Below are positions 101-36,738 of a stretch of 64,000 nucleotides of DNA, in pieces (the first letter of the stretch is position 1; every line of letters starts with the position of its first letter). The position numbers were made by a program, and so were the translations under genes. The stretch lies in the sequence record LC680884.1; one strand, given 5' to 3'. The notes beneath the pieces are model-generated. The model had not been told where the DNA came from and ran no database searches. It was given only the letters and a program-made list of their open reading frames with translations.

Positions 101-337
101 TTAGATATCAAGATCATCTTTACAATCTTCTAAAATGTCAAATAATAATTGAACATCATCATAATTCAATGTAATTCCTTTACCCATCTTGCTTCGGTCT
201 TCATTCCAATCCCGAATATCTAATTTAGGTTTTCCATTATTCCATTTAACAATATTAACCTGCTTTGTCCAACCATTTTTACCTTCTGAAAGTACTCCTA
301 ATTCTTTTACTATCTCAAATGTTACTTCTTTTCCCAT
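101..337 (-). CDS. PC4/YdbC-family ssDNA-binding / transcriptional coactivator-like protein
   Basis: FEIVKELGVLSE..GWTKQVNIVKWNNGKPKLDIRDW...KMGKGITL is the YdbC/PC4 signature. Confidence 0.85.
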   Translation of the reverse strand: MGKEVTFEIVKELGVLSEGKNGWTKQVNIVKWNNGKPKLDIRDWNEDRSKMGKGITLNYDDVQLLFDILEDCKDDLDI

Positions 338-339
338 AG

Positions 340-504
340 TTAATTCCCCTCTAATTTCTTAATTTTTAATTTTAACTCTTTAATAGTGTTATCTCGTCTT
401 TCAATTATTTCTTCATAATGAAATAATCTCTGTACAGCATATAAAGGATTCTTCTTTACCCACCTAAATGTTTTAATCCATTCTCTTAGATTATCTTTTT
501 CCAT
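340..504 (-). CDS. small hypothetical protein (54 aa, coiled-coil C-terminus), not in ORF track
   Basis: Manual translation MEKDNLREWIKTFRWVKKNPLYAVQRLFHYEEIIERRDNTIKELKLKIKKLEGN; fills the gap between neighbours with short overlaps. Confidence 0.55.
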   Translation of the reverse strand: MEKDNLREWIKTFRWVKKNPLYAVQRLFHYEEIIERRDNTIKELKLKIKKLEGN

Positions 505-1018
505 ATTGAGACTCTAACTTTCTTTCATCAAATTTATATAATGTCACATCATAATCATCAAAAACATCATTAATTATTTTTCTAACTTTTATCCAATCTC
601 CTCCACCTCTTCCACAACCAATTTTATATGGAAGTGCTATAGATAAATTATGAGGTTTTGCAAATTCCTTTAGCGTTATTAAGCATTCTTTTAAATAAGA
701 ATATCGTGTATATCTCCCCTTATTACCATATCCAAATTGTGAAAATAGATTTACAAAATATTTTGTACTATTATAAGTAAATAAATCATCTTCTTCACTA
801 AAAGGAGACTTACGAGATACAAGAATAATTTGACATTCACCAAGTAGATTTTCCGGCTTTGTTGACTTACAAATTTCTTTATATTTTTTAAGAATAAGAG
901 GATGTTTTTTAGCAATCTGTAACGCAATACCAGATCTCATAACTCCCTGACAATTTACTTGGTGCGCAATTATATTTTTCTCAGCTTCAAGCAAGTTACC
1001 TTCTTTCTCAATTATCAT
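491..1018 (-). CDS. macrodomain protein (Appr-1''-p processing / ADP-ribosylhydrolase family)
   Basis: GNLLEA..IIAHQVNCQGVM.SGIA.QI, NLFSQ, SIALPYKIGCGRGGGDW motifs. Confidence 0.88.
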   Translation of the reverse strand: MIIEKEGNLLEAEKNIIAHQVNCQGVMRSGIALQIAKKHPLILKKYKEICKSTKPENLLGECQIILVSRKSPFSEEDDLFTYNSTKYFVNLFSQFGYGNKGRYTRYSYLKECLITLKEFAKPHNLSIALPYKIGCGRGGGDWIKVRKIINDVFDDYDVTLYKFDERKLESQYGKR

Positions 1019-1100
1019 TTTTCTTCCTCCTATTTTAAAGAATATAAGTGTAATGATTTCTAATAAATATTAATGTGAACCCTTCCTAGTTCATGTAATA

Positions 1101-1508
1101 TTATAAAATTTCATTGATATTTCTATAGTGAATAGATGGAACAAATTTATCTTCTGATGGAAAGATATACTTTTTATTAGAATTCTTCATTACAGGTTCT
1201 AGTTCATAAAACATTGAAAGTCGTGAAATATTAGGAGTAACTTTAAAATGTGAAATATCTTTAAATTCTGGATGATTAATTACAATATTAGCAAATGATA
1301 AAGCATCTTCACTACTTGAGAAGACCATTACCTCTCCTTTTTCTAGATGATCTAAATATACTTTAACCATCTCATCAACTTCCATAATATCTTTTTCTTC
1401 TAATTCATATGTATCTAAAATTTTCTTTTTAACATATTCTAACTGAATTTCTTCTACGGTTACTTCTTCATTTTCTGTTTTTCTTTTAAATTCTACTACA
1501 TTCCCCAT
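1101..1508 (-). CDS. hypothetical protein
   Basis: 135-aa ORF with RBS, co-oriented; no motif recognised. Confidence 0.7.
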   Translation of the reverse strand: MGNVVEFKRKTENEEVTVEEIQLEYVKKKILDTYELEEKDIMEVDEMVKVYLDHLEKGEVMVFSSSEDALSFANIVINHPEFKDISHFKVTPNISRLSMFYELEPVMKNSNKKYIFPSEDKFVPSIHYRNINEIL

Positions 1509-1591
1509 AAAATATCTCTTCCTCTCAAAATTATGTCTTTTTTATTACAGGAAATAAACATATTAATAATGTCCTCCTGTAATTTTAATAG

Positions 1592-1630
1592 CGTATAATA
1601 GATGTGAAACTGGCACACATCTATTATACG
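1592..1630. other. 15-bp perfect hairpin without a clear U-tract
   Basis: CGTATAATAGATGTG (1592-1606) / CACATCTATTATACG (1616-1630), 9-nt loop. Confidence 0.7.
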
Positions 1631-1644
1631 TCTCTTATTATGAT

Positions 1645-1830
1645 TTATATTTGTTCATTATAAATTTCTCTAGTTATATCTTGAACTAATTTTGTGTCAT
1701 ATTGACCATCTAACTTAATTAAAACAGCTTCTAGAATCTTCTTAAAATTACGAATACCAAAAGTAAAATGGGTAAAGATAGTATTATCAGCAACCCATCT
1801 AATTTCTTTTTCTATTTCATTCACTCCCAT
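1645..1830 (-). CDS. hypothetical protein
   Basis: 61-aa ORF whose start overlaps the RNAP gene stop. Confidence 0.6.
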   Translation of the reverse strand: MGVNEIEKEIRWVADNTIFTHFTFGIRNFKKILEAVLIKLDGQYDTKLVQDITREIYNEQI

Positions 1831-3827
1831 TATTTTTCATCCTCTACTTTTCCATTTAGTTTATTTTCCCATTCTTCTTCTACATCATCAATAGAAAGAC
1901 CGAGACATGTAAATAAAGATTTAAGAATCTTACTTGTACCTGACTCTACATCTGAAAGATCAATATTGGTATCAAATGGATTTCCAGTTAATAATTGCAT
2001 AATAAGTTCTCTTCTATTAGTCTCATTATTAGAGTATGAATTTAGCATATCCATAATAGAACCCATTTCATTAGTAAGACTTAAGTTAGAAATCTCCATA
2101 TTACCAATACGTACAGGTGTTTTTGAATATAAGTCTTTATGCTCTTTAAAGTTCTTAGATTTAGCTGGTAGACCTCTTAGGTTCATAAATGATGTACTAC
2201 GAGCGCTAAATTTAGAATGCGGCTCATGTTTTAATCTAACCATATAAATTTCTCCAATAATTAAAGGAGTACTAATTCCCTCACATTTAAAGTAATCAAT
2301 ATGATCATAATGATCGTATAATTCCCAAAGTTCATCTAAACCAATATTACCAAAGAATGGCTTTTGACAGATAGGAATTCCATTTTCAATAATATCATTT
2401 AGAAACTCTTCTAATTCTGTTTTATTTAGACTATTAATGAATTCTTCCATTAATTCAGTTTCTTCTTTATTCACTCTATTTAAGAAATCAAGTAAGATGC
2501 TAACTTTTTCTTCATTACTTCCTGCTTCTTCCATATCTTTTCTAATGAATTTAGCAATCCAGTTTAATTCTTGTTCGATCAACTGACTTGGATTAAGGCG
2601 GTTAAATACACCAAGAGGATTAAGACAAATGTCTGCCTTGAGTCCTTTAAAACGTCCTTCAGCCACAGTAGGCATTTGATCATCAGGGAGTATTTTACTA
2701 ATTACACCTTTATTACCATATCTACCTGTAATCTTACTTCCTTTATTTAATGGTTCTTCTTCTAAAATTGTGAATTCCATAATAAAACCACTAAACTTAC
2801 TATTCTGATAAGTGTAAGAAATATTTTCATCAATTCTCATTTTACAATTATTATAGAAATGCAATAGCTTGTCTGAAACATTACTATCTTTACCTTCTAC
2901 AATATTTTTAAGTTTTTGATAAACATTATTAGAAAATTCTTTTTGCTTATTAATATAGTATAGAACTTGTTCATTATACTTCTGTACCTTTAATTCTTCT
3001 TCAGGTACATTAGAGAAAATCTCAATATCTACAATCTTACCATCAGCAAAGAATGGAGTATCTGAATCTCTCATTTCATTTAGATTCTTTAATTCATATA
3101 ATGCAGTGTTATAATCAAATCTTCTACGGCTAGCAATAATCTGATTTTTAATATGTTCTCCAATATCTGGGAATCCTTTATAGTTCTCATTATCACCATA
3201 TAGGTTAAGCAAGATATCATTTGTATTGACAGATACTTTTACTTTGTTAACACTATATGTTCCTAGCTTTTTAGCGGCACTTTCAGAGATTACAATAGCA
3301 TCCTCTAATGTTTCATTCTTATAACTAAAATATGCAGCATTTAAATTAACACCATAACCAAAATTCATATTTTCATCATAACAGGTATTCTTATATAATA
3401 CAGTATCTTTTTCAATTGTATCATCTTTCTTTAATGAATCAATTTTATCATTATCCCATTGAAAACCATAATGTTCAGTTAGAAACTCACATTCAGCTCT
3501 TTCAAATAATGTATATTCCCCAGTTTCCTGATCTTGTACAATAAGTACATAATTATAATCATTCTTATAAATTTTTTCAATAACCTTATAATTACTATTA
3601 GCCTTTCTATAACCTGCAGTTGAATACTTTCCAACTTGATTCTCAAAGTTAGTATAGACTAATGGCGGTTCAGCCTTTTGTAGAGTTACTGCCTGTGCTA
3701 AGTGAGAGCAGAACATTGTAGATCTATTACCGTCTGTTTTATTTGCATTAGGCATTAACAATTCCTCTGCTAAAAATCTATGTGAACCTTCATAATCTTC
3801 ATTCTTAATTACACTGATGTCATCCAT
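1830..3827 (-). CDS. phage multisubunit RNA polymerase beta subunit, C-terminal half (non-virion RNAP, AR9 gp089-like)
   Basis: Beta motifs R..MFCSH..QAV, EDAIVISES, GSKITGRYGNKGVISKI, DICLNPLGVFNRLNPSQ, GEIYMVRLKH, RIGNME; length and N-terminus match my recollection of AR9 gp089. Confidence 0.95.
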   Translation of the reverse strand: MDDISVIKNEDYEGSHRFLAEELLMPNANKTDGNRSTMFCSHLAQAVTLQKAEPPLVYTNFENQVGKYSTAGYRKANSNYKVIEKIYKNDYNYVLIVQDQETGEYTLFERAECEFLTEHYGFQWDNDKIDSLKKDDTIEKDTVLYKNTCYDENMNFGYGVNLNAAYFSYKNETLEDAIVISESAAKKLGTYSVNKVKVSVNTNDILLNLYGDNENYKGFPDIGEHIKNQIIASRRRFDYNTALYELKNLNEMRDSDTPFFADGKIVDIEIFSNVPEEELKVQKYNEQVLYYINKQKEFSNNVYQKLKNIVEGKDSNVSDKLLHFYNNCKMRIDENISYTYQNSKFSGFIMEFTILEEEPLNKGSKITGRYGNKGVISKILPDDQMPTVAEGRFKGLKADICLNPLGVFNRLNPSQLIEQELNWIAKFIRKDMEEAGSNEEKVSILLDFLNRVNKEETELMEEFINSLNKTELEEFLNDIIENGIPICQKPFFGNIGLDELWELYDHYDHIDYFKCEGISTPLIIGEIYMVRLKHEPHSKFSARSTSFMNLRGLPAKSKNFKEHKDLYSKTPVRIGNMEISNLSLTNEMGSIMDMLNSYSNNETNRRELIMQLLTGNPFDTNIDLSDVESGTSKILKSLFTCLGLSIDDVEEEWENKLNGKVEDEK

Positions 3828-3856
3828 TTATATTCCTCCTAGTTGTATGTATCTTT

Positions 3857-4309
3857 TTAATAATCTTCTGAACGATCTACTATATTAGCGTCACCTATCC
3901 ATTGATAATTATCTGTAGAAAGTGGATACGCATATCCTCCTATAATAAGTACTTTATAATATTTAACAAAAATAAATTCATTTCTCAAATTGTTTATTGC
4001 AATAACTTCACTAGATCCTTTTCCAAATTCTCTAATATAGTTAACTGTATTCTCATCATATTTGAATATATCTTTAAATATAGAAAAGTCAGTATCAGGT
4101 CTTAAAGAAATTGCAATTTCAGAAATATAATAACGATCTTCGAAACCCAATTCTTCAAAAGGTATATCTTTTAAAATTTCATTATCTGATTCATACAAAT
4201 CATTGACTAATTTTATTTTACTATACTTCTTATTGTTATTATTTCTATCAAATCTTGTATATTCATATAACATTCCAACTCTTGGTACTTCGAATCCCTC
4301 TATTTCCAT
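3857..4309 (-). CDS. hypothetical protein
   Basis: 150-aa ORF, GAGGAG RBS. Confidence 0.7.
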   Translation of the reverse strand: MEIEGFEVPRVGMLYEYTRFDRNNNNKKYSKIKLVNDLYESDNEILKDIPFEELGFEDRYYISEIAISLRPDTDFSIFKDIFKYDENTVNYIREFGKGSSEVIAINNLRNEFIFVKYYKVLIIGGYAYPLSTDNYQWIGDANIVDRSEDY

Positions 4310-4475
4310 ATTAACACTCCTCTTTTATATACTTCTCTAAAATATCTTTAAATATTAAATCATTCTTTTGTTTTTCATTCTTTTTATTTTTTAAAAATTT
4401 ATTCCTTAATTTATTATTATAAATAGGTATAATTGGACTGACTGGTTGTATTAACATGATAAATAACTCCTATGT

Positions 4476-4868
4476 CTATATTTTTTCCACCAATAATTCT
4501 ATATAATTTGGACGTAACATATGGCTACCATCAAAAGATATCATAGTACTAAGATCTTTGAAATAAGAAATACTCTTAATTTTACTATCATTTGTTTTAA
4601 TAACATCTCTTAATCGATTATCCCTATAAACTATTTTCTTTTCTGGATCATAGATATCTACTGTAAACCTCAATGCATCAATAAAACCATATAATTTTCC
4701 ATCTTCACCATATGTATCTTCCTTTGGATACATATGAATAACTGGATTGTTAATAGTTAAATGATATGGAATATCATTTTCTTCTGTATAACAAGAAAAT
4801 AGATTATTCATATAATCTACACTTTCTGGTTGAATTGCTACATTCACTATACTTTTTACAACTTTCAT
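4476..4868 (-). CDS. hypothetical protein
   Basis: 130-aa ORF, AGGAGG RBS, early-type motif upstream. Confidence 0.75.
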   Translation of the reverse strand: MKVVKSIVNVAIQPESVDYMNNLFSCYTEENDIPYHLTINNPVIHMYPKEDTYGEDGKLYGFIDALRFTVDIYDPEKKIVYRDNRLRDVIKTNDSKIKSISYFKDLSTMISFDGSHMLRPNYIELLVEKI

Positions 4869-26929: not shown

Positions 26930-27025
26930 AACTTTTTTAAAAAATACCTCCTAAAAGACTAATATGTTTTTATTATATTATAACAAGTATATAATATATA
27001 TTTTAAAAACATATTAGTCGTATTA

Positions 27026-28045
27026 TTAAATAACTTTAAATAAAAACTCTCTATATGAAAATGTTGGTGTTTTCTTTCCTCGATTTATATTAATATAAAT
27101 ATCTACTTCTTCATTTGGAAGTATATCAGGTATAGTAATTGATTCACTAAAATTAATATTATCTAAACTTAATTCAATCAAATCATCACTAAGTGTTTCG
27201 GTTGTTAGAGTTAAATTATTATATGTCTGGTTATCTGAAATATTCTTTAATGTAACTAATTGAGGAGAGCCGTAAGTATCAATTTCAGTCACTTCTTCAT
27301 TTGGAAGTACTTGATCTTTGTAAATCATTTCTAACTTATAGTCACAAGCTACAAATGTATTTCCATATGAAAAATTCATTTGATCAGTTCTTATTACTTC
27401 ATTACCCTCTAAGTCATATATTGCTAGATACCCATTGATATTGTAATCTAAAAATATTCTAGCTTCATTATTTAGATCAAACAATCTTTCCTTAATTAAA
27501 GTATTAGTTTCATCAAACAATTTAGCACTGTATCCTTCAGGAAAATTTTGAATAGTTAAAAATGGATCAGTATAGACTGCATAATGTATTAATTTTGCGC
27601 TTTTTGTACTTATTTTTTGAAACCCCTGTTTAATAATATTTTCACCTAAAGTACTGACACCTCCTAGATTCTGCCATGATTTACCATCATCTGATACATA
27701 ACATTGAACATAACCCTCAGAATAAATGATCTTCTGAAATTGTTTTTGAATGGGTTCATCCTTGTCTTCACTTATTCCATATTCATTTACTGAATCACCG
27801 ACATAAAATGTAAATTTCTCATCATCATTTAATTCTTCCCAATTTTCTTTTTTAATTTCAATAAGAAAATTATTATAATTTAGGGTTCTTTCAATTCTTT
27901 CATTAGTATCAATATACAGAGAATTATCATCAAAATCCTTATGAGTGCCACCCTTATTTAAAAAATCAGCAAAGTCACTGTTAGTATAGAAATTATCTAA
28001 TTCCAATCTACCATCTCTTACCTTTAAAAGATTCATAAATAACAA
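27026..28045 (-). CDS. beta-rich protein, possible lectin/adhesin-like structural protein
   Basis: YVSDDGKSW motif; Ig-like C-terminus; follows the structural module. Confidence 0.6.
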   Translation of the reverse strand: MLFMNLLKVRDGRLELDNFYTNSDFADFLNKGGTHKDFDDNSLYIDTNERIERTLNYNNFLIEIKKENWEELNDDEKFTFYVGDSVNEYGISEDKDEPIQKQFQKIIYSEGYVQCYVSDDGKSWQNLGGVSTLGENIIKQGFQKISTKSAKLIHYAVYTDPFLTIQNFPEGYSAKLFDETNTLIKERLFDLNNEARIFLDYNINGYLAIYDLEGNEVIRTDQMNFSYGNTFVACDYKLEMIYKDQVLPNEEVTEIDTYGSPQLVTLKNISDNQTYNNLTLTTETLSDDLIELSLDNINFSESITIPDILPNEEVDIYININRGKKTPTFSYREFLFKVI

Positions 28046-28062
28046 TACTCCTTTCTTTAATT

Positions 28063-28100
28063 AAATGAATGTAATGGGAAATACCCCATTACATTCATTT
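28063..28100 (-). terminator. intrinsic terminator
   Basis: 16-bp stem AAATGAATGTAATGGG/CCCATTACATTCATTT. Confidence 0.7.
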
Positions 28101-28370
28101 TTAGTTTCTCGTAGAGCTATTAGCAGGAAGAACTTCTGTCATAATAATATTGTCCATACCCGCAAGTTTCGGATCTTTTGGATTTTGCAACCAATCATTA
28201 AAGATTTCTTTTGCACCATCAAAATCATTATTTAAATAAATTAGTTTCCATTTATTAATATTACCATTCTTACTGACTGCAACAAAAACTCCCCACATTT
28301 TTTGTCTAGGTTGTTTAAAAATACTATTACTTGTTGAAACAGCATTATATTCAACTGTAGAATATTCCAT
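28101..28370 (-). CDS. paralog triplet A, member 3 (89 aa)
   Basis: RQKMWGVF..W.L..AKE.FNDWL.P..AG..NI..EV.P motif. Confidence 0.75.
   Translation of the reverse strand: MEYSTVEYNAVSTSNSIFKQPRQKMWGVFVAVSKNGNINKWKLIYLNNDFDGAKEIFNDWLQNPKDPKLAGMDNIIMTEVLPANSSTRN
28284..28320. repeat. 37-bp exact direct repeat, copy 1 (copy 2 at 29192-29228)
   Basis: AAAAACTCCCCACATTTTTTGTCTAGGTTGTTTAAAA, encoding FKQPRQKMWGVF. Confidence 0.9.
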
Positions 28371-28384
28371 TTATATATCCCTCC

Positions 28385-28984
28385 CTATAATTCAATTATA
28401 CTATCAGAAGGTACTATTTCTGTAATCATTATGCTGTTTATACCAGCTAATGGATAATTGCTACCAATCTCAGGTAAACGCAACCAATCATTCACTTTAT
28501 CTTTGGCTTCTTGAAGACTTTTTGTTAGTAATACGAGATTCCATGAATAATCTTTTACCTTTGAATAGTAGTAATAGATTTTAACATTATCATACAATAG
28601 ATCACTATCAGCATAATAAGGTTGATTATCTCTAAAAATTGAACCATCAAGAATTCTTTTAGTTCCTAGTTTGGTTGCTCCATCTTTAAGAATAGAAACA
28701 TTAAGAATTGTTTTAATTTCTTCACCTTCTGGACCAGTTTTTGGAATAATCGCATTTGGATCATAATCCTTAATAGAATAATCTTTTTTTGCCAAATTTG
28801 AACTCTCAATTCCAAATAATGTATAGTCTTCTTTCATTGAAGATGCATTAACTGGAACAGGTTCTCCATCTGTTTCTTTATATTCACTAACAATAAAGAC
28901 TCCCCATGTCTTTTGACGTAATTTATTAAATGTATTATCTTCATTAGCTAGTGATTTATATGCAACTGGATCAAATCTACCCAT
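28385..28984 (-). CDS. paralog triplet A, member 2 (199 aa; about 110-aa insertion)
   Basis: RQKTWGVF ... insertion ... WNLVLLTKSLQEAKDKVNDWL.P..AGINSI..EIVP. Confidence 0.75.
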   Translation of the reverse strand: MGRFDPVAYKSLANEDNTFNKLRQKTWGVFIVSEYKETDGEPVPVNASSMKEDYTLFGIESSNLAKKDYSIKDYDPNAIIPKTGPEGEEIKTILNVSILKDGATKLGTKRILDGSIFRDNQPYYADSDLLYDNVKIYYYYSKVKDYSWNLVLLTKSLQEAKDKVNDWLRLPEIGSNYPLAGINSIMITEIVPSDSIIEL

Positions 28985-29005
28985 ACTAAATTCCTCCTAT
29001 TAAAG

Positions 29006-29281
29006 TTAAATTACTTCCATATCAACAGGAACAACTTCACAAAGAATGATGTTATTCAATCCAGCTTGAGCATATTGACCAGTTGGCGGATTTTTTAACC
29101 AATCATTAACTTTTTCTTTAGCTTCTTGAAGACTGTTGGTCAGCAAAGTCAATTCCCAATATTTTGCTCCGTCCTGTGAATTTGGACGACTAAAAACTCC
29201 CCACATTTTTTGTCTAGGTTGTTTAAAAGAAGAACTAGTACTTCCTACAGAATTATAAGTTGGACCAGTAGTTGTTGCCAT
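29006..29281 (-). CDS. paralog triplet A, member 1 (91 aa)
   Basis: RQKMWGVF..WELTLLTNSLQEAKEKVNDWL..AGLNNI..EVVP. Confidence 0.75.
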   Translation of the reverse strand: MATTTGPTYNSVGSTSSSFKQPRQKMWGVFSRPNSQDGAKYWELTLLTNSLQEAKEKVNDWLKNPPTGQYAQAGLNNIILCEVVPVDMEVI

Positions 29282-29298
29282 ATTTTTTCCTCCTTAAT

Positions 29299-31878
29299 TT
29301 ATAAGAGATAATTATTATCTTCAGAGTCGATGATATAATCTCTTTCACCTTTATTTTTGTCAGGGAGTTCTATCATGATATCTCCCTGTGGATCATCATC
29401 CATAATTGCTCTCATAATATCCATTCGGTCTAAAGATTTATAGAGAGGTACAATCATATAGTGGTGAAATTCAATATATTCTAAAAGATTTTTGGTAAAT
29501 ATCTCCATATAATGATTACCGTTATATATTAAATTGTTTTGGTAGTCTTTCTTGAAATCAAAGTATATTTTCTCAGCTTCCCATCTAATCCATCTAAAAA
29601 CTCGTTCGTATTCTTTATTAGTTTTATCATCATTAACTTGATTTTGGGAAGATTCTAAATTCCACCACTCATTTAATACATTCATAATGCCAATAATAGA
29701 TTCGTCACCTAGTCCTCTATAGAGTTCATTGTAAGAATGATGCCACCAATGCATAACAATATTAACCAATTCAAGTAAAATCTCAATACTGACATCAATA
29801 TCATTAGTACCTAAATCTTTAAATGCTTGAATAGGATGTTCCTTCATATCCATTACTGGTTTATTTTCATAAGGATAGTCAATAGATGGAATATTGATTC
29901 TTGTTTTTGGATTAGTTGGCTTTATAAACCACCAGCGTTTATTTAATGTAAGAAAATTTACTGAATCAATATACTTAAACTTATCTAATCTCTTACCTTC
30001 GACTAGTTTTAGTTGTTTTTTGACAATATTTATATCAATATTGGGATTTAAAATATCTTTGACTGATATAAATTTTCTTTTATCTATCTTAATATAGTTT
30101 AATTTATCTAATGAATAATTATAATTATTTGTAATATTTGGTAATTCACTTTTAAATAAATTATAATTATTATAATTTACACTAATAATTTTATTTTCAA
30201 AATTACTCAGGAACTCACTATTAGGAATAAAAATAAAATTATCTCCATTATCAATATTCAAATAATAATTAGATAGTGTTTCAAATAAACCCTCTGGTTG
30301 TTTTATATTCAAATTAAAATCTTTATGGATAGGATTACTCATGTATTTATAATGCTTATCCAAATCAAAAGTTTTATTAATTTTATTTATATCCTTTACT
30401 GTATTAGGGCTATAGTACTTGGATAAATTTGAGTCATTAATAATATTCTTAAGATTTGATTTAAATAAATATTGATTATTACTTGTCGCTGTAACTGATT
30501 TGGAACTATTATTTATTAAGAAGTTATCATTTACATCAATAAATAAATTTTGTTTATTTATTTTTTCAAGATAATCAATGAAAGTGAAATTAAAAATATC
30601 TTTTTCATTAATTGGATGTAAGTAATAATCATTCCTAACTAATGATAAATCCTTTCTTGAGATTGACTGTAAAAAAGAAATCTTAGTATTATAATCAATA
30701 TTCACTTTTGAAATATCTAACAATGAATAGACTAGAAACTTAAAAGATGTATCCATCATAGTTGTCTTTTTAAAATATACTTTTTCATTATTTGAAGTTA
30801 TATCTTTAATTGTATCTTTATTTATATTAAAACTATTACTAGGTTTACTTATTTCCCAAGTAGGTTCCTTTCTAATAAACTTCCACCCACTAAGTAATTT
30901 AGAGATATTTTTATCCCCATCTTTACTAAGAGTGTTAACAGTATTAATATTATTTCCACTTCTAATAACTCTCTTAACTAATCCAAGAGTATCAGAATTC
31001 TTATTAATATCCTTTATAACAATTGTATCTAAATGATGAACTTTTTGAGTATCTTTTTTGATCTGATGCAATGAATTTTTATAAATATCATATATAATAT
31101 TATTTATATTAATAGATCTAACATTTTCATTTCCTAATTTAATAGATAAAGTTGCTAAATCTAATTTATAGTTATTCTTTACAAAAGTATTAATAGTATT
31201 ATATACATTAATATGACTTTTGTTATTTCTATTTAATTCAATTAAATCACTCTCAAGATTTAATTCCTTCATGGATTCATTGCTAATCTGAAAGTAATTT
31301 CCCTCTTTGCCAACAAATCTATACTTAGTCTCTAATAAAGTACTAATTGTATTATAAGTTATTTCTCTTTTATCAGAAGAAACTGTTAAATTATTATTTG
31401 GAATATATATCTCATATGTAATACCATTAATGTTTATACTATTAATGGTACTAATGTTATGAGATGTTTTTCTTAATTTATTTTTATCCATCTCTATATA
31501 GTCCAGTAAAGAATTCGTTTTATATACATTTAAGTTATTTTTTTCTACAGTATAAATCCTTTTATTAAGAATTTCTACTGTATATTTATCAATTTTTTTG
31601 TCTATTAATTTATTAGGTACGGTTAATTTTTTAGTAGACTTTGCTGTTTTATCTAATTCTTTAACAAAAAAATCTAATAAAACCTCTTTTTTATTTAAAT
31701 AGAGATTATGAATTGACTTAAGAATAGATAAATTTTTATTTTTAACTATTTTTTTAGGAGACTCATCAATTTTTAAAAAAACTGATGAGCCATTAATTAA
31801 ATAAGCTTTAAATGTATAACGAAATCTATGGGCAAATAGAGGTAGACCAGTTTTAAATGAAAATCTTTGCAAAAACAT
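29299..31878 (-). CDS. large N/K/I-rich protein with globular C-terminal domain
   Basis: 859 aa; about 640 aa low-complexity, then a Trp/His-rich domain (RWWFIKP, HWWHH, WIRWEAEKIY). Confidence 0.7.
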   Translation of the reverse strand: MFLQRFSFKTGLPLFAHRFRYTFKAYLINGSSVFLKIDESPKKIVKNKNLSILKSIHNLYLNKKEVLLDFFVKELDKTAKSTKKLTVPNKLIDKKIDKYTVEILNKRIYTVEKNNLNVYKTNSLLDYIEMDKNKLRKTSHNISTINSININGITYEIYIPNNNLTVSSDKREITYNTISTLLETKYRFVGKEGNYFQISNESMKELNLESDLIELNRNNKSHINVYNTINTFVKNNYKLDLATLSIKLGNENVRSININNIIYDIYKNSLHQIKKDTQKVHHLDTIVIKDINKNSDTLGLVKRVIRSGNNINTVNTLSKDGDKNISKLLSGWKFIRKEPTWEISKPSNSFNINKDTIKDITSNNEKVYFKKTTMMDTSFKFLVYSLLDISKVNIDYNTKISFLQSISRKDLSLVRNDYYLHPINEKDIFNFTFIDYLEKINKQNLFIDVNDNFLINNSSKSVTATSNNQYLFKSNLKNIINDSNLSKYYSPNTVKDINKINKTFDLDKHYKYMSNPIHKDFNLNIKQPEGLFETLSNYYLNIDNGDNFIFIPNSEFLSNFENKIISVNYNNYNLFKSELPNITNNYNYSLDKLNYIKIDKRKFISVKDILNPNIDINIVKKQLKLVEGKRLDKFKYIDSVNFLTLNKRWWFIKPTNPKTRINIPSIDYPYENKPVMDMKEHPIQAFKDLGTNDIDVSIEILLELVNIVMHWWHHSYNELYRGLGDESIIGIMNVLNEWWNLESSQNQVNDDKTNKEYERVFRWIRWEAEKIYFDFKKDYQNNLIYNGNHYMEIFTKNLLEYIEFHHYMIVPLYKSLDRMDIMRAIMDDDPQGDIMIELPDKNKGERDYIIDSEDNNYLL

Positions 31879-31902
31879 AGTCTACATCCTCTCCCTTGTT
31901 AA

Positions 31903-32994
31903 TTAGCTAGCAGTAGTACCATCTTCAACTTTTGAAATACCATCTGGATTATAGCATCTAATCGCAATACAATATTGTGTATTAGAACTATTGTTTAGGA
32001 AACTATAAGGTGCGGAAATCTGGAATTTCTTATAAGTTAATTGTTCTGTAGTACCTTCTTTGTATACAAGTTTATCATTATCATAAAGAGCTGAATTATC
32101 ACCAACTAGGATATTCTGCATTTTACCACGTTCCATATCAATAGAGTGAGTAACAGTAATATCTGAAAATTGATGTTTTTGGTTGTTCCAACGTGAACCC
32201 TCAATATTCATCTTATCCATAAACTGATTAGAACCATAGAATGATGGATAGTGCGGCTGATATGGCATACCAATTTTGTTTGCTACCATCAAGATATCAG
32301 TGATTCCTGTACCAGTTCTTGGTCCATAAGCATTGCTCATTACTGGTTCGCTTGCAGAAGAAGTAGTAATACCAAAGTTATATTCTACATCTGGTGATTG
32401 ACCATCTTCTAATGGTGTAACTGCACCAATATATGCATAGCCTACCAAGAATTTTTTATATGGATAATTATCAGCAGATGGATCTCCACGGAATACAAGG
32501 TTAACTGCATCTTTTGTAATATTCATCCAATATGAAACTGGTAGCCATGATTTGATACTTGGATCAATATCATCTTTATACCAAGATAATTTAGTTACTG
32601 GTGATACCTTACCTTCTACTAAATCCTCAGTTTCAGCATTAAATTCTGTGCCGATTGCCATATTTACATAAGTAAGTGGAACTGAAACTACATTATTTGC
32701 ATCTGTAGTCTCTGGTCTAAAGATTTTTAAATAGAAAGTTTTTCCAAATGAAGTTGTTGTAGATAGGATTACCTTATTTGTGACATTAGAAATAGCTGAT
32801 GGTGATTCTAATGTCCATGCATACTCAGTTCCAGCTTTTGTAACAAATTCATTGGCTACATTTTTAATAAGATCACCGACAGAAGTAGAACCCTCTGTGT
32901 AGTAGAACTTATCATTGCTTCTAAGATTGTAATCTACTAAAGCCATATTATTTTTGCTACTACTATTATAATAGTAGTAACTTCCTCCTTCCAT
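31903..32994 (-). CDS. putative structural (fibre/tail) protein
   Basis: 363 aa, G/S/T/Y-rich beta composition, within a late module. Confidence 0.55.
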   Translation of the reverse strand: MEGGSYYYYNSSSKNNMALVDYNLRSNDKFYYTEGSTSVGDLIKNVANEFVTKAGTEYAWTLESPSAISNVTNKVILSTTTSFGKTFYLKIFRPETTDANNVVSVPLTYVNMAIGTEFNAETEDLVEGKVSPVTKLSWYKDDIDPSIKSWLPVSYWMNITKDAVNLVFRGDPSADNYPYKKFLVGYAYIGAVTPLEDGQSPDVEYNFGITTSSASEPVMSNAYGPRTGTGITDILMVANKIGMPYQPHYPSFYGSNQFMDKMNIEGSRWNNQKHQFSDITVTHSIDMERGKMQNILVGDNSALYDNDKLVYKEGTTEQLTYKKFQISAPYSFLNNSSNTQYCIAIRCYNPDGISKVEDGTTAS

Positions 32995-33020
32995 TAATGG
33001 GGTATTATTTAGCTAGGAAA

Positions 33021-33707
33021 TTAGCTAATAGTGAGAAAATCAATATCATAATATATAGTTTTTTGTTTTCCACTATTATTATAAAATAAAAATTCAACTC
33101 TATCAGTAGGAATAACTTTTAAAGGTGAAGAAAAATATTTTCTTTGTTCAATTCCCTTAGAAAAAACATTTTCAAACACAGTTACTCCATTAACTCTTAA
33201 ATCCCAACAGTCTGAAAAATCATATTGATTTTGAAAACTTGTAATTTTAGTAATATTTGATTCTTCAGAAACTTTACAATTCAAATAGTAGGTTCCATTA
33301 ACACTTGGAATATCTTTACGGATACTAACTGACTTATCAATTCCTTTTAGAGATAAATAATCTTTTATTTTATTTAATAATTCATTTATCTCTAATTCTT
33401 CAGCAATTAATCTTGAAACTAGTAATGACAAATCATATAATCTGTCAATATATAAGTCCTCAACTATGGTAGTATTTGCTAATAAGTTACTGACAGACAT
33501 AAATAAGTCTTGAGCATTCTGAGACTGTGTATTCAATACATCTAATATTGATTTCATTCCGGTTTCAATACCTTCTGTATTTCCTGAAATAACTGTCTCT
33601 GGAAGTTTTAAACCTGTTAAATTGACTTTTAAACTGTTAGAATTAAGAGCCTGAATAATTATTTGTTCTAGATCTTCACGATTAATAATATGAGAAGGCA
33701 TTCCCAT
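33021..33707 (-). CDS. paralog triplet B, member 3
   Basis: MGMPSHIIN start; coiled-coil middle; C-terminal WDL.V...F.NV..K..F.NNSG..K..Y.D. Confidence 0.75.
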   Translation of the reverse strand: MGMPSHIINREDLEQIIIQALNSNSLKVNLTGLKLPETVISGNTEGIETGMKSILDVLNTQSQNAQDLFMSVSNLLANTTIVEDLYIDRLYDLSLLVSRLIAEELEINELLNKIKDYLSLKGIDKSVSIRKDIPSVNGTYYLNCKVSEESNITKITSFQNQYDFSDCWDLRVNGVTVFENVFSKGIEQRKYFSSPLKVIPTDRVEFLFYNNSGKQKTIYYDIDFLTIS

Positions 33708-33724
33708 TTAATGAATAAACCTCC

Positions 33725-34417
33725 TTACTGTGGTTTTATTAAATACTCTATATCTAACCACATCTGTCTACTATTACCACTATTATTATGAAGAATAAAT
33801 TTTATAGAAGTATTAGCAGGTACTTTTAGTCCTTTATTAAATTTCTTTTTTTGGGCAACTTCTTTTGTAGAGATATTACTAAATATAATATCTTCACCAA
33901 CCATTAAATCATAGGTATCTTCATATTTCCAACCTATTTGGGACATAGAAATTGCTGTTAGTTCAATATCCCTATTCTGTATAAACTCTAATATAAAATC
34001 CTCTCTTATAGGAGGAACATATTCATAAAAACCTTTAATTCTTTGTTCTCCTTGGGGACTTAGCTTATCAGCTATACCAGATACTGTATCTTTAATACTT
34101 TTTGTAACATCTAACTGAGATTTTAATTTAGTTTCAATTTGATTTATTATTTCTTTATTTTCTTCACTTGTTGTAATAATGAAGTTAGATATATTTTCAA
34201 TATCGGATGATAAATTAGAAATAGTCTGATTAATAACATCATTTATATCAACTATCGAGCTTAATTTGCCTTCAACTACTGAAGTATTTAATATAGCTTC
34301 AGTGACTTTATCCATATTAACGTCACTTATGGATAAAGATAATCTAGCATCTCTAATAGCCTCCTGAATATATTTTGCAGAGTCATTATAGTTTATTATA
34401 TAAGAAGGAAGCCCCAT
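33725..34417 (-). CDS. paralog triplet B, member 2
   Basis: MGLPSYIIN; GEQR.KG; SQ..W...D.YDL; NNSGNSR..W.DI. Confidence 0.75.
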   Translation of the reverse strand: MGLPSYIINYNDSAKYIQEAIRDARLSLSISDVNMDKVTEAILNTSVVEGKLSSIVDINDVINQTISNLSSDIENISNFIITTSEENKEIINQIETKLKSQLDVTKSIKDTVSGIADKLSPQGEQRIKGFYEYVPPIREDFILEFIQNRDIELTAISMSQIGWKYEDTYDLMVGEDIIFSNISTKEVAQKKKFNKGLKVPANTSIKFILHNNSGNSRQMWLDIEYLIKPQ

Positions 34418-34433
34418 TTAAGTTACCTCCTAA

Positions 34434-35135
34434 TCAAACTGTAGGTTTATCAATTTCAATATAGTCAATATCAAACCATACATACTTACTATTGGCACTA
34501 CTAGTATTATCAAATTGAAATGTTATTGGTGTATTAGCTGGTACTGGAAAGAATTTCTTTAATTCTTTATGTTCTCCACGATTTTTAGTATAAATTCTAT
34601 CAAACATAATAAAATCACCAATTTTTAGAGACCATTTATCATTGTTATTCCATGCTGATTGAGAGATAGTTATCCCAGTTAAAATAGTATCTTTATCACT
34701 AGTAAAAACTTTTGTGTAACTACCAGCTACACTTGGAACTGCAAGTGAGTATCCAATGGCTCTTTGATTTCCTTCAGTTGCCAATTGTTTCTTAATTTCT
34801 TCCAATATATTAAACATACTTGTAGTTGTACTTAATATATTGTCAAGTTTAGTTCCTAATTGATCCATTGAATTTTTAAGATTATTATCATGAGCAATTA
34901 AACTATTAAGAATATTTTTACTAGCATCCTGAACTAATTTAATATTACTATCAACAGTTCCTAATTTAGATAGAATATCATCTAAAGATTTTTCAATTTC
35001 AGTTGTATCAATTGTAATAGAGGAAGAATCTAAAGTTACATCACCAACTGATACTGAAATTGCTGCTTCATTAATAGCCCTAATAATTGGATCCTTAATC
35101 TCTTCAAAGTTTATAATTAGACTTGGTAAACCCAA
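34434..35135 (-). CDS. paralog triplet B, member 1
   Basis: MGLPSLIIN; GNQR.IG; SQ..W..NDKWSL; NTS..NSK..W.DI. Confidence 0.75.
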   Translation of the reverse strand: MGLPSLIINFEEIKDPIIRAINEAAISVSVGDVTLDSSSITIDTTEIEKSLDDILSKLGTVDSNIKLVQDASKNILNSLIAHDNNLKNSMDQLGTKLDNILSTTTSMFNILEEIKKQLATEGNQRAIGYSLAVPSVAGSYTKVFTSDKDTILTGITISQSAWNNNDKWSLKIGDFIMFDRIYTKNRGEHKELKKFFPVPANTPITFQFDNTSSANSKYVWFDIDYIEIDKPTV

Positions 35136-35147
35136 CTTATATCACCT

Positions 35148-35498
35148 CTATTCATATTTCAATTCTGTACCAAGAAACATGCCATTTTCATCACGAAGAA
35201 TAGTTTCAACTGTAGAGGTTCCATTAGGTCTAACAGTTCTAATACCAATTACTTGACCAGTTTCCTCATCACGAAGAATTTCTTCTGACCACATGACAAC
35301 AGGTTCTCCTTCCATCATCCGAGACATGTTTCCATAAACTACCTTAGTAACTTGATTTGTTTCTGGATCTCTGATAAGTTGTACTGGTTCTTCAGGTGCA
35401 ATTGTAATAGAGGAAGAACCACCATCTGTACTTGTTGAATCATCCCATGATAATTGGTCTTCCCATCCCTTAGCTGTATTACTTGGCATATTCCTCAA
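35148..35498 (-). CDS. small acidic protein with three (I/L)RDxxxGx(V/F) beta-hairpin repeats
   Basis: LIRDPETNQV, ILRDEETGQV, ILRDENGMF; late motif at 35525-35514. Confidence 0.7.
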   Translation of the reverse strand: MRNMPSNTAKGWEDQLSWDDSTSTDGGSSSITIAPEEPVQLIRDPETNQVTKVVYGNMSRMMEGEPVVMWSEEILRDEETGQVIGIRTVRPNGTSTVETILRDENGMFLGTELKYE

Positions 35499-35539
35499 CT
35501 CCTTTATTAATTATATAGTAATGTTCAAGAGAAATAAAT

Positions 35540-35569
35540 AATTACTGTCAAATTAGATTGACAGTAATT
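35540..35569 (-). terminator. hairpin/terminator
   Basis: AATTACTGTCAA/TTGACAGTAATT. Confidence 0.6.
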
Positions 35570-35574
35570 ACCTT

Positions 35575-36738
35575 TTAGTGTTTTAATTGATTTTGCTGGA
35601 TAAATAATACAATATACATATAAAATGCTTTTCTATAACTGATTCTAGTAGCTTCTCTCTCAGTTTCACTGTATTTATTACTATTATTCTTAAGAAAATA
35701 ATCAAGAAGTTTTTTAATTCTCAGAATATTCACATCTTTTGTATTACTCTTAGAATATATGGAAATACAATATGCAATAAATCTCTGAGAAGCTATACTT
35801 TCATAACTATTCTTTCCATCAATCAAATATACTTGTAGAATAGATTGAATAAGACTTTCAACTTTTTCTCGCTCATTCTTTTTAATACTTTCTAAAGCAT
35901 ATTTAAGTGTGATAGGGCTTACATCACTAAATTTAGATGAAACTCTAATTAACTTATCATTTAAATCTCCTGAATAAAACTTATTAGTCGTTTGACTAGT
36001 TAAACGAGATATCATTAATGAAACATTATCAGTTTCAAAATAATTATCTGCATCATTACTATCTTTTTCAGTATTTAAAAAATTTTTATTCTTATAATTT
36101 TTCATATACTCGTTGGTAAAATTTTTCATGAGATTATTTAAACGAGTTTGTAGAAACATTAAGAAATTAACAATATCCATGTCATTTCCTCGCTCTAATT
36201 CTTTTTTATATTTCTCTAACGTTTTATTAGCTGTATGAAAAAGAGCCTTAATTACTACACCATATTGTTTAAATAAAAATTTATTATTTAAATTATTAAT
36301 AGTATAACTCATTACATTTTCATTTGGAGTAAATAAGCGAAAATATTTATAGTGTAGTGAGCTATAGAGAGCAAGAGTTAAATATAATAATGCATTATTT
36401 AATGATTCTTCTTTTTTATCTATTGAGTATTGCCGAATAATCATTGTCATTGCTATATTGAAAGGATTTTTAACAATTTTCCATGAACTTTTAATCATAT
36501 CTACTTTTTTAATTATTTCATTTACATATTCTTTTTTAATATTGATAATATTAAAAACATGTTCTCTATCAACATCTGAAAAGTAAAGTCTCTCTATAGG
36601 AGCATTTGCATATAATATTTGGTTATTATGATCTATATATTTCTTAACTATATGATTTAATTTGTCAGTATTATGTTTATCAGATAAAGCAACATGAATA
36701 GCTTTTTCTAAGTTATCTTTTATCACAGTGTGATTCAT
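35575..36738 (-). CDS. hypothetical alpha-helical protein
   Basis: 387 aa; late motif at 36777-36766. Confidence 0.75.
   Translation of the reverse strand: MNHTVIKDNLEKAIHVALSDKHNTDKLNHIVKKYIDHNNQILYANAPIERLYFSDVDREHVFNIINIKKEYVNEIIKKVDMIKSSWKIVKNPFNIAMTMIIRQYSIDKKEESLNNALLYLTLALYSSLHYKYFRLFTPNENVMSYTINNLNNKFLFKQYGVVIKALFHTANKTLEKYKKELERGNDMDIVNFLMFLQTRLNNLMKNFTNEYMKNYKNKNFLNTEKDSNDADNYFETDNVSLMISRLTSQTTNKFYSGDLNDKLIRVSSKFSDVSPITLKYALESIKKNEREKVESLIQSILQVYLIDGKNSYESIASQRFIAYCISIYSKSNTKDVNILRIKKLLDYFLKNNSNKYSETEREATRISYRKAFYMYIVLFIQQNQLKH

Follow-up and report, generated by a model that had tools for sequence, protein, structure and literature searches.

A candidate helical-fibre gene cassette of Bacillus phage PBS1 and its relatives in Clostridium prophages

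Which genes encode the corkscrew fibres of phage PBS1? According to the 2022 review of flagellotropic phages, PBS1 typically carries three thick corkscrew fibres of about 125 nm length that wrap the flagellum, and neither this review nor the literature searched up to 2026 names genes for them. A candidate locus is found at positions 27026-35498 of a stretch of 64,000 nucleotides from sequence record LC680884.1, the whole of which is called the window here. The locus matches Bacillus phage PBS1 with 100% and AR9 with 97.9% identity, comprises 8.5 kb with ten co-oriented open reading frames (ORFs) on the minus strand separated by tiny spacers, and corresponds to gp243–gp252 of PBS1 and g053–g062 of AR9. 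The original prediction, made from the letters of the sequence alone, had proposed a module for a fibre, either helical or curly, or for some other appendage of the tail. This proposal is partly supported: late expression, the presence of products in virions, the homology to fibre candidates of two other phages (ORF129 and Gp133), and a fold shared with the baseplate of phage JBD30 all speak for it. The stretch is probably a helical-fibre cassette, in which gp247 would be the subunit that polymerises. The virion proteins gp248–gp251 would be assembled together with it, and gp244–gp246 and gp252 would be low-copy adhesins or connectors.

gp247 and its relatives in phages with helical or curly fibres

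Helical or curly tail fibres have been documented, among sequenced phages, for PBS1, AR9, BpSp, and 0305phi8-36. Curly fibres are 8-10 nm thick, and a trimeric β-helix would suit this thickness less well than would a polymer built from globular subunits. In 0305phi8-36, which carries three corkscrew fibres, the block of ORF126-134 is absent from the fibre-less relative BtI1 and has been assigned to the curly fibre by copy number, ORF129 and ORF131 being high-copy proteins (Thomas et al. 2007; Hardies et al. 2007, PMC2147016). This assignment by copy number is itself a candidate only, and ORF129 is annotated as 'major virion structural protein; candidate for curly fiber protein'.

The PBS1 gene gp247 (AR9 g057; 31903..32994, minus strand) contains an ORF of 363 residues but may start at M17, resulting in 347 residues as in the AR9 annotation. 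Its residues 219-345 match residues 856-981 of ORF129 with 39% identity (E 2e-20 in tblastn and 2e-25 in blastp), and a second matching segment comprises residues 130-199 of gp247 and 518-610 of ORF129. The similarity is not restricted to this gene. ORF132 belongs over its full length to phrog_7317 together with gp252 (6.5e-110), and ORF128 is a relative of the head domain of gp244–gp246 (7e-9; phrog_5955/phrog_6376). The order of ORF128-129-130-131-132 mirrors that of PBS1, and all five genes are located inside the ORF126-134 block. ORF132 has been found in 0305phi8-36 virions by mass spectrometry, and ORF128 by a single peptide only. Homology to PBS1 is given for ORF128 (triplet B head), the C-terminal part of ORF129 (gp247), and ORF132 (gp252), whereas ORF130 and ORF131 correspond to gp248 and to the gp249–gp251 group by position only. 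In contrast to PBS1, ORF129 has 989 residues including a long extension and insertions, a gp243 relative is absent, and there is a single short relative of gp244–gp246.

The connection to BpSp (vB_BpuM-BpSp, Bacillus pumilus) is closer. This phage encodes the complete ten-gene cassette (gp129-gp138), and its Gp133, which is 63% identical to gp247, has been found in virions and was suggested as curly-tail-fibre candidate by its similarity to ORF129 (Yuan and Gao 2016, PMC4870245). That study treated Gp133 and the unrelated Gp25; neither the cassette nor the fold nor the Clostridium prophages described below were part of it. A further homologue, ct54, shares 44% of the residues with gp247. One relative carries a CBM_X2 domain. 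Another homologue, P0085 from Clostridium sp. WILCCON 0269, is labelled 'Capsid protein' in UniRef, which is likely a mis-annotation given that the gene is found in tail modules.

Sequence searches of gp247 and gp248 against the PDB did not reveal any match. We built a structural model of gp247 from an alignment of 34 sequences, which reached a predicted local distance difference test score (pLDDT) of 74 and a predicted template modelling score of 0.78. The model is rich in β-strands, and the only solved fold that it matches is found in the baseplate of Pseudomonas phage JBD30 (8rk3). VIA-align superimposed 252 residues onto 8rk3_c with a Z score of 17.6 and a root-mean-square deviation of 3.9, the runner-up having a Z score of 4.2, and Foldseek matched chains K and G with E values of 4e-6 and 1e-5. 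Based on gene lengths and a sequence look-up the matched chains are gp47 and gp48, 8rk3_c being gp47. These are similar globular proteins that form heterodimers; three heterodimers chain into each arm, and the type IV pilus is enclosed by the three bent arms of a baseplate (Valentova et al. 2024, PMC11445458). In gp247, the block around residues 224-273 shows the highest conservation of the family and at the same time the lowest confidence of the model, in which it is unstructured in the monomer. As judged from the model, this hints at these residues making the contact between subunits.

Among predicted structures (BFVD), ORF129 is the top match of the gp247 model. The gp47-like fold is also present in three more 0305phi8-36 proteins, Gp371 of phage G, proteins of Atu_ph07, and 'virion structural proteins' of JBD30-like siphophages. 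The three extra 0305phi8-36 proteins (A7KUT2, A7KUT3, and A7KUT4) have 267-293 residues and probably lie in the baseplate region, judged by the order of the accessions; the phage G protein has the accession G3MAB2.

Gene content and late transcription of the cassette

The ten co-oriented genes of the original prediction were all found as minus-strand ORFs with the sizes given there, and the description of their products as a repeat protein, a β-rich protein of 363 residues, a low-complexity protein of 859 residues, a lectin-like protein of 339 residues, and two gene triplets (A and B) proved correct. The two triplets are true paralogs by shared PHROGs and, in addition, by a common motif in triplet A and by mutual identities in triplet B. 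The composition is AT-rich across the module, with a GC minimum of 21.6% over the large gene gp248. Late expression had been predicted as well, and all ten AR9 orthologues are indeed late genes, whose transcripts rise from about 0 at 5 min to 156–4637 at 40 min (expression units of the supplement; PMC5312081).

The late promoter motif AACA-N6-TA, whose consensus derives from differential RNA sequencing (dRNA-seq) of AR9 (PMC5312081), is located at 35514..35525 (minus strand) upstream of gp243, with a predicted start site at 35514. It directly follows the terminator hairpin of the upstream gene gp242 (35536..35573, minus strand; a 16-bp stem followed by a T-rich tail), which forms the 5' border of the module. 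In AR9, the g053 transcript has an abundance of 3 at 5 min and 1971 at 40 min, compared to 210 for g052 upstream of it (PMC5312081). A mapped start site of g053 is not listed in the text of the AR9 dRNA-seq supplement. The idea that this one motif heads all ten genes holds for the motif itself, which is real, but it is not the sole promoter. Three additional late start sites from the AR9 data map to positions 33656 (within g056), 33049 (before g057), and 29527 (before g059) of the window, two of which fall exactly on consensus motifs in PBS1, and a further late motif ends at 28427, 57 nucleotides before gp251. The non-virion RNA polymerase would transcribe the cassette late, using the promoter at 35525 as well as three or more late promoters inside the module, as has been shown for AR9. 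A scan for sigma-70 promoters yielded fewer sites than found in shuffled sequences, a result that is irrelevant to the phage's own polymerases. The genes g057, g059, and g061 are strongly transcribed in AR9, although transcription does not equal copy number.

Between gp251 and gp252 there is a perfect 16-bp hairpin (28063..28100, minus strand) that is not followed by a T-run on the coding strand. At this position, the AR9 transcripts drop 30-fold, from 4637 (g061) to 156 (g062). The hairpin is probably an attenuator and would cause this drop. At the other end of gp252, the early-promoter consensus AAATATATATTAT is present at 26990-27003 (minus strand), about 20 nucleotides past the stop codon, so that late structural and early genes abut here without a recognisable terminator.

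Among the accessory genes, those of triplet B precede gp247. gp244 (g054; 34434..35135), gp245 (g055; 33725..34417), and gp246 (g056; 33021..33707), all on the minus strand, encode proteins of 233, 230, and 228 residues, which all match phrog_6376 and share 25-33% mutual identity, the highest value being found between gp244 and gp245. The late start sites 33656 and 33049 are both located within gp246. The model of gp244 (pLDDT 80) consists of a conserved N-terminal peptide, a single helix of 74 residues (45-118), and a C-terminal jelly-roll head of eight strands. The fold search with this head resulted only in generic jelly-roll matches with Z scores of 8-10, including the C-terminus of lambda gpJ and a tail fibre of phage 7-7-1. 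According to the model, gp244 has the stalk-plus-head design of many adhesins, but these matches are too generic for claiming a family. The head domain of gp245 matches ORF128 of 0305phi8-36 (7e-9) and ct53 (1e-26). Because a word-seeded search for gp245 homologues gave only three matches, the alignment of triplet B was built from the neighbours of gp247 homologues. In two further loci (L011, 4793-7944; L014, 1702-4723) the paralogs are enlarged to 459-544 residues by added C-terminal domains, which suggests modular swapping of heads.

The first gene of the cassette, gp243 (g053; 35148..35498, minus strand), encodes a small repeat protein matching phrog_27078. As ORF of 116 residues it contains three (I/L)RD(P/E)E(T/N)G-type repeats resembling β-hairpins; the true start is probably the annotated ATG at 35489, resulting in 113 residues. 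Its relatives are found at the equivalent position in Clostridium prophages (ct51, 1e-8; lj114).

Downstream of gp247, gp248 (g058; 29299..31878, minus strand) encodes a large virion protein of 859 residues and includes the late start site of gp249 at 29527. The sequence is rich in N, K, I, and L. The conserved parts are about 60 residues at the N-terminus and about 215 residues at the C-terminus, and the C-terminus matches ct55, lj147, and proteins of L012 and L013. Compared to the copy in phage Internexus (L016), gp248 is 73% identical overall but only 50-60% identical in its centre (residues ~150-650), where the alignment contains only one gap in each sequence. This is in contrast to gp243–gp247, which are 97–99% identical between PBS1 and Internexus. 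Because the alignment of the centre is almost free of gaps, it is not a disordered linker. The conservation pattern rather suggests a folded, length-constrained, and fast-evolving region that possibly faces the host. The centre looks like a hot spot of recombination or diversification. Searches in Pfam, in PDB sequences, and in the ESM Atlas did not provide any lead for gp248.

Triplet A consists of gp249 (g059; 29006..29281), gp250 (g060; 28385..28984), and gp251 (g061; 28101..28370), all on the minus strand, with products of 91, 199, and 89 residues. They are assigned to phrog_8907/phrog_26711 (gp249 to phrog_8907) and share the invariant motif FKQPRQKxWG. All three are virion proteins in AR9. 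The larger size of gp250 includes an insert of about 100 residues, relatives of the small gp249 are ct56 and lj87, and gp251 is the most strongly transcribed gene of the module (4637 in AR9 at 40 min). The last gene, gp252 (g062; 27026..28045, minus strand), contains an ORF of 339 residues, whose true start is probably the annotated ATG at 28036 (336 residues). The protein has an N-terminal concanavalin A (ConA)-like lectin fold followed by more β-domains, its structural neighbours in the Atlas are of the ConA-like/GH43_C2 type, and it is 37% identical to ct57. ORF132 of 0305phi8-36 also matches the Pfam domain GH43_C2. gp252 is a candidate for a low-copy binding or tip protein.

Upstream of the cassette, gp242 (AR9 g052; 35575-36738, minus strand) encodes a late protein of 387 residues (phrog_2921). 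In AR9, a separate late start site serves g052 and is arranged back to back with the one of the zincin protease gene. PBS1, BpSp, and the three metagenomic Takahashivirus-like contigs all have a gp242-type gene immediately before the cassette. The Clostridium prophages do not have it there, and gp242 may be a lineage-specific adaptor of the module.

Spread of the cassette into Clostridium prophages

In tblastn searches with gp247, gp248, and gp252 against 50,697 phage records, relatives were found only in PBS1, AR9, Goe21, Internexus, BpSp, and two 47-kb Clostridium tetani records, which are predicted prophages. 0305phi8-36 was matched by gp247 alone. The cassette has a fixed order of a gp243-like gene, two to three triplet B-like genes, a gp247-like gene, a gp248-like gene, one to three triplet A-like genes, and a gp252-like gene. 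This order is present in all Takahashivirus-like phages examined, is kept as a whole in BpSp and three metagenomic jumbo contigs according to an all-against-all comparison, and is also found on several distinct siphovirus-type prophage backbones of Clostridium. Each cassette of PBS1, BpSp, the metagenomic relatives, and the Clostridium prophages contains a single gp247-type gene. In two of the metagenomic jumbo contigs, genes of the Acb2/Tad1-hairpin family (anti-CBASS/anti-Thoeris sponge type) are located a few kb downstream of the cassette (L009, 15776-16162; L010, 16921-17026).

The original prediction had asked about similar chromosomal clusters, and these do exist, as tail-end modules of Clostridium prophages. 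Here, the cassette is located downstream of the genes for the tape measure and for a protein of the tail-hub type (phrog_1887, or Prophage_tail/YOMG_N) and upstream of the lysis genes, which is the site of genes for adsorption organelles. The Clostridium cassettes include one additional conserved gene (phrog_15809) after the gp252-like gene (L003, 16422-17504; L006, 14478-15563; L012, 14458-15888; L013, 13804-14868) that does not have a counterpart in PBS1, and then genes of the Discoidin, Laminin_G, or similar lectin types.

A word-seeded search resulted in 178 relatives of gp247, mostly from Clostridium, and a pattern scan of species genomes in 20 loci, which belong to Clostridium or Hathewaya only. 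Among 390 species genomes of the Clostridiaceae, 28 (about 7%) encode a gp247 relative. The cassette in about 7% of these genomes would predict that flagellated clostridia harbour a large group of prophages, so far unrecognised, whose tail appendages are unusual, and the gp247 family could serve as a marker gene for spotting such phages in sequence data. ORF129 and BpSp Gp133 as fibre candidates and the list of AR9 virion proteins have been published before. New are the cassette as a whole and its occurrence in Clostridium prophages, the match to the JBD30 fold, the architectures of the domains, and the variability in the centre of gp248.

Assembly, rival explanations, and other fibre systems

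A mechanism can be proposed by which gp247 would stack subunit on subunit into a thick helical filament instead of forming a classical thin trimeric fibre. gp248 and gp249–gp251 would be co-assembled and may act as cement, attach the fibre to the baseplate, set its length, or form part of its surface. The best candidate for a host-specific surface is the fast-evolving centre of gp248. gp244–gp246 together with gp252 would provide low-copy stalk-and-head or tip adhesins or connectors. The helical filament could then wrap the flagellar filament in the same way as the arms of JBD30 embrace the type IV pilus. The cassette is portable: many siphovirus-type prophages of Clostridium would use it as their distal tail appendage, and 0305phi8-36 would do so in part. 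The corkscrew fibres would thereby obtain a concrete set of ten genes, a structural model of the main subunit, and a solved analogue, the JBD30 arms.

Several observations weigh against assigning the stretch to the helical fibres. The predicted structural nature of the module agrees with g057–g061 (gp247–gp251), which were identified in AR9 virions by mass spectrometry, but the orthologues of the other five (gp243, gp244–gp246, and gp252) have not been reported there. The AR9 list gives presence in the virion only, neither location nor copy number. Similarly, the proposed kinship with curly-fibre proteins of 0305phi8-36 extends to gp247/ORF129, gp252/ORF132, and triplet B/ORF128, which are found in the same order, but not to the other candidates: for ORF119, the third curly-fibre candidate, tblastn retrieved a relative only in a Moorella phage and none in PBS1 or AR9, and the comparison of ORF131 with the triplet A profile by hhalign gave a probability of 0.4%, thus no similarity. 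ORF130 and gp248 also do not share any detectable similarity. At the sequence level, hhalign with the 34-sequence gp247 alignment gave probabilities below 1% for JBD30 gp47 and gp48, although single-sequence templates make this a weak test. The gp47-like fold is a widespread tail building block and no proof of a long fibre, being present in tail proteins of phages for which long fibres are not known (phage G Gp371, Atu_ph07) as well as in the three further 0305phi8-36 proteins. JBD30 itself uses two adjacent paralogs as heterodimers whereas the cassette contains only one such gene. Flagellin is encoded in all of the 28 gp247-positive Clostridiaceae genomes compared to 323 of the 390 overall (p of about 0.005 in a naive test that ignores kinship), but given the high background and the ignored kinship this association is merely consistent with a flagellar target and does not constitute evidence.

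Could the cassette build another peripheral structure of the tail or baseplate, with the helical fibres being encoded elsewhere? PBS1 has further appendages, namely short fibres on the sheath and contraction fibres, and an outer baseplate ring would be another option. In favour of such a structure, proteins of the baseplate region share the gp47-like fold in phages that are not known to have helical fibres, as do three extra paralogs of 0305phi8-36, the arms of JBD30 are short with three dimers each, and the AR9 proteomics do not assign a location. However, the Clostridium siphovirus-type prophages, which do not have a sheath, carry the whole cassette. Among isolated phages the family is restricted to the PBS1-like group and 0305phi8-36, whose examined members are helical- or curly-fibred, the 0305phi8-36 relatives are located in the very block that distinguishes this phage from the fibre-less BtI1, and ORF129 is a high-copy protein. 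Another structure than the helical fibre is thus unlikely. It is even harder to imagine that the cassette provides a general device for adsorption to the cell wall, directed to a secondary receptor such as wall polysaccharide or teichoic acid, and that any fibre formed does not bind the flagellum. The ConA-like fold of gp252, the GH43_C2 match of ORF132, the jelly-roll head of gp244, which is of a type common in carbohydrate-binding modules and receptor-binding proteins, the CBM_X2 domain of one gp247 relative, and the receptor-binding position of the Clostridium cassettes ahead of discoidin or Laminin_G genes would all fit to such a device. But it would leave unexplained why the family is exclusively linked to phages with helical or curly fibres and why the main virion component has a fibre-forming fold, and the presence of flagellin in all cassette-bearing Clostridiaceae genomes does not speak for it either. 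We regard it as quite improbable. Binding of the wall and of the flagellum are, in addition, compatible with each other, because parts of one appendage could bind both.

A different question is whether all ten products become part of the structure. It is conceivable, although rather doubtful, that gp243, gp244–gp246, and gp252 are assembly factors or chaperones and that the structure is built from gp247–gp251 only, which would modify the assignment as helical-fibre cassette but not replace it. This would account for the five products that are not listed as AR9 virion proteins and for ORF128 being backed by a single peptide in 0305phi8-36. In contrast, the gp252 relative ORF132 has been found in 0305phi8-36 virions, the stalk-plus-head design is typical for structural adhesins, and gel-based mass spectrometry often fails to detect proteins of low copy number.

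Returning to the helical-fibre cassette, it seems possible, as a tentative and more general reading, that helical and curly fibres represent a distinct class of adsorption organelles. These would be polymers of JBD30-gp47-like globular proteins with accessories, and a single portable cassette of seven families would encode all of them. Bacillus jumbo myoviruses and small siphovirus-type prophages of flagellated Clostridium, among them lineages of C. tetani, C. botulinum, and C. sporogenes, would have exchanged this cassette, and pilus-tropic and flagellotropic phages would share the principle of a chain of globular subunits that encloses a host filament. If this were true, the cassette-bearing Clostridium prophages would be predicted to be flagellotropic.

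How does such a fibre compare to the known ones? The original prediction had noted that nothing in the module resembles the classical fibres of T4 or lambda, and the searches in Pfam and PDB sequences agree with that. None of the ten proteins had a Pfam match above cut-off or at E <= 0.1, and a sequence or family match to the classical trimeric fibres (T4 gp34-37, lambda Stf/gpJ) is absent from the cassette, the only resemblance being the generic one between the jelly-rolls of the gp244 head and the gpJ C-terminus. A precedent in principle is given by the Goslar proteins gp22/gp23 (DUF7941 of the chimalliviruses), whose fibres on the peripheral baseplate are head-to-tail polymers of globular subunits, and in which the next subunit is contacted by a linker that has no order in the monomer (PMC13742148). 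These filaments represent a second example, besides JBD30, of phage fibres from globular subunits. The analogy is in principle only: gp247 does not have a Pfam match to DUF7941, and the Goslar proteins do not have a known structural match while gp247 has one in JBD30 gp47.

The closest comparison is therefore that to JBD30. Sequence similarity between gp47/gp48 and gp247 is undetectable, JBD30 infects a Gram-negative host and targets a pilus, triplets A and B, gp248, and gp252 do not have counterparts there, and arms of only three dimers contrast with fibres of about 125 nm. What both systems have in common is a globular virion protein encoded in the distal tail module, with the overall fold of gp47 (Z score of 17.6 over 252 of 317 residues; PDB 8rk3), and a host filament that is gripped by three appendages, the pilus by the three arms of JBD30 and the flagellum by the typically three fibres of PBS1.

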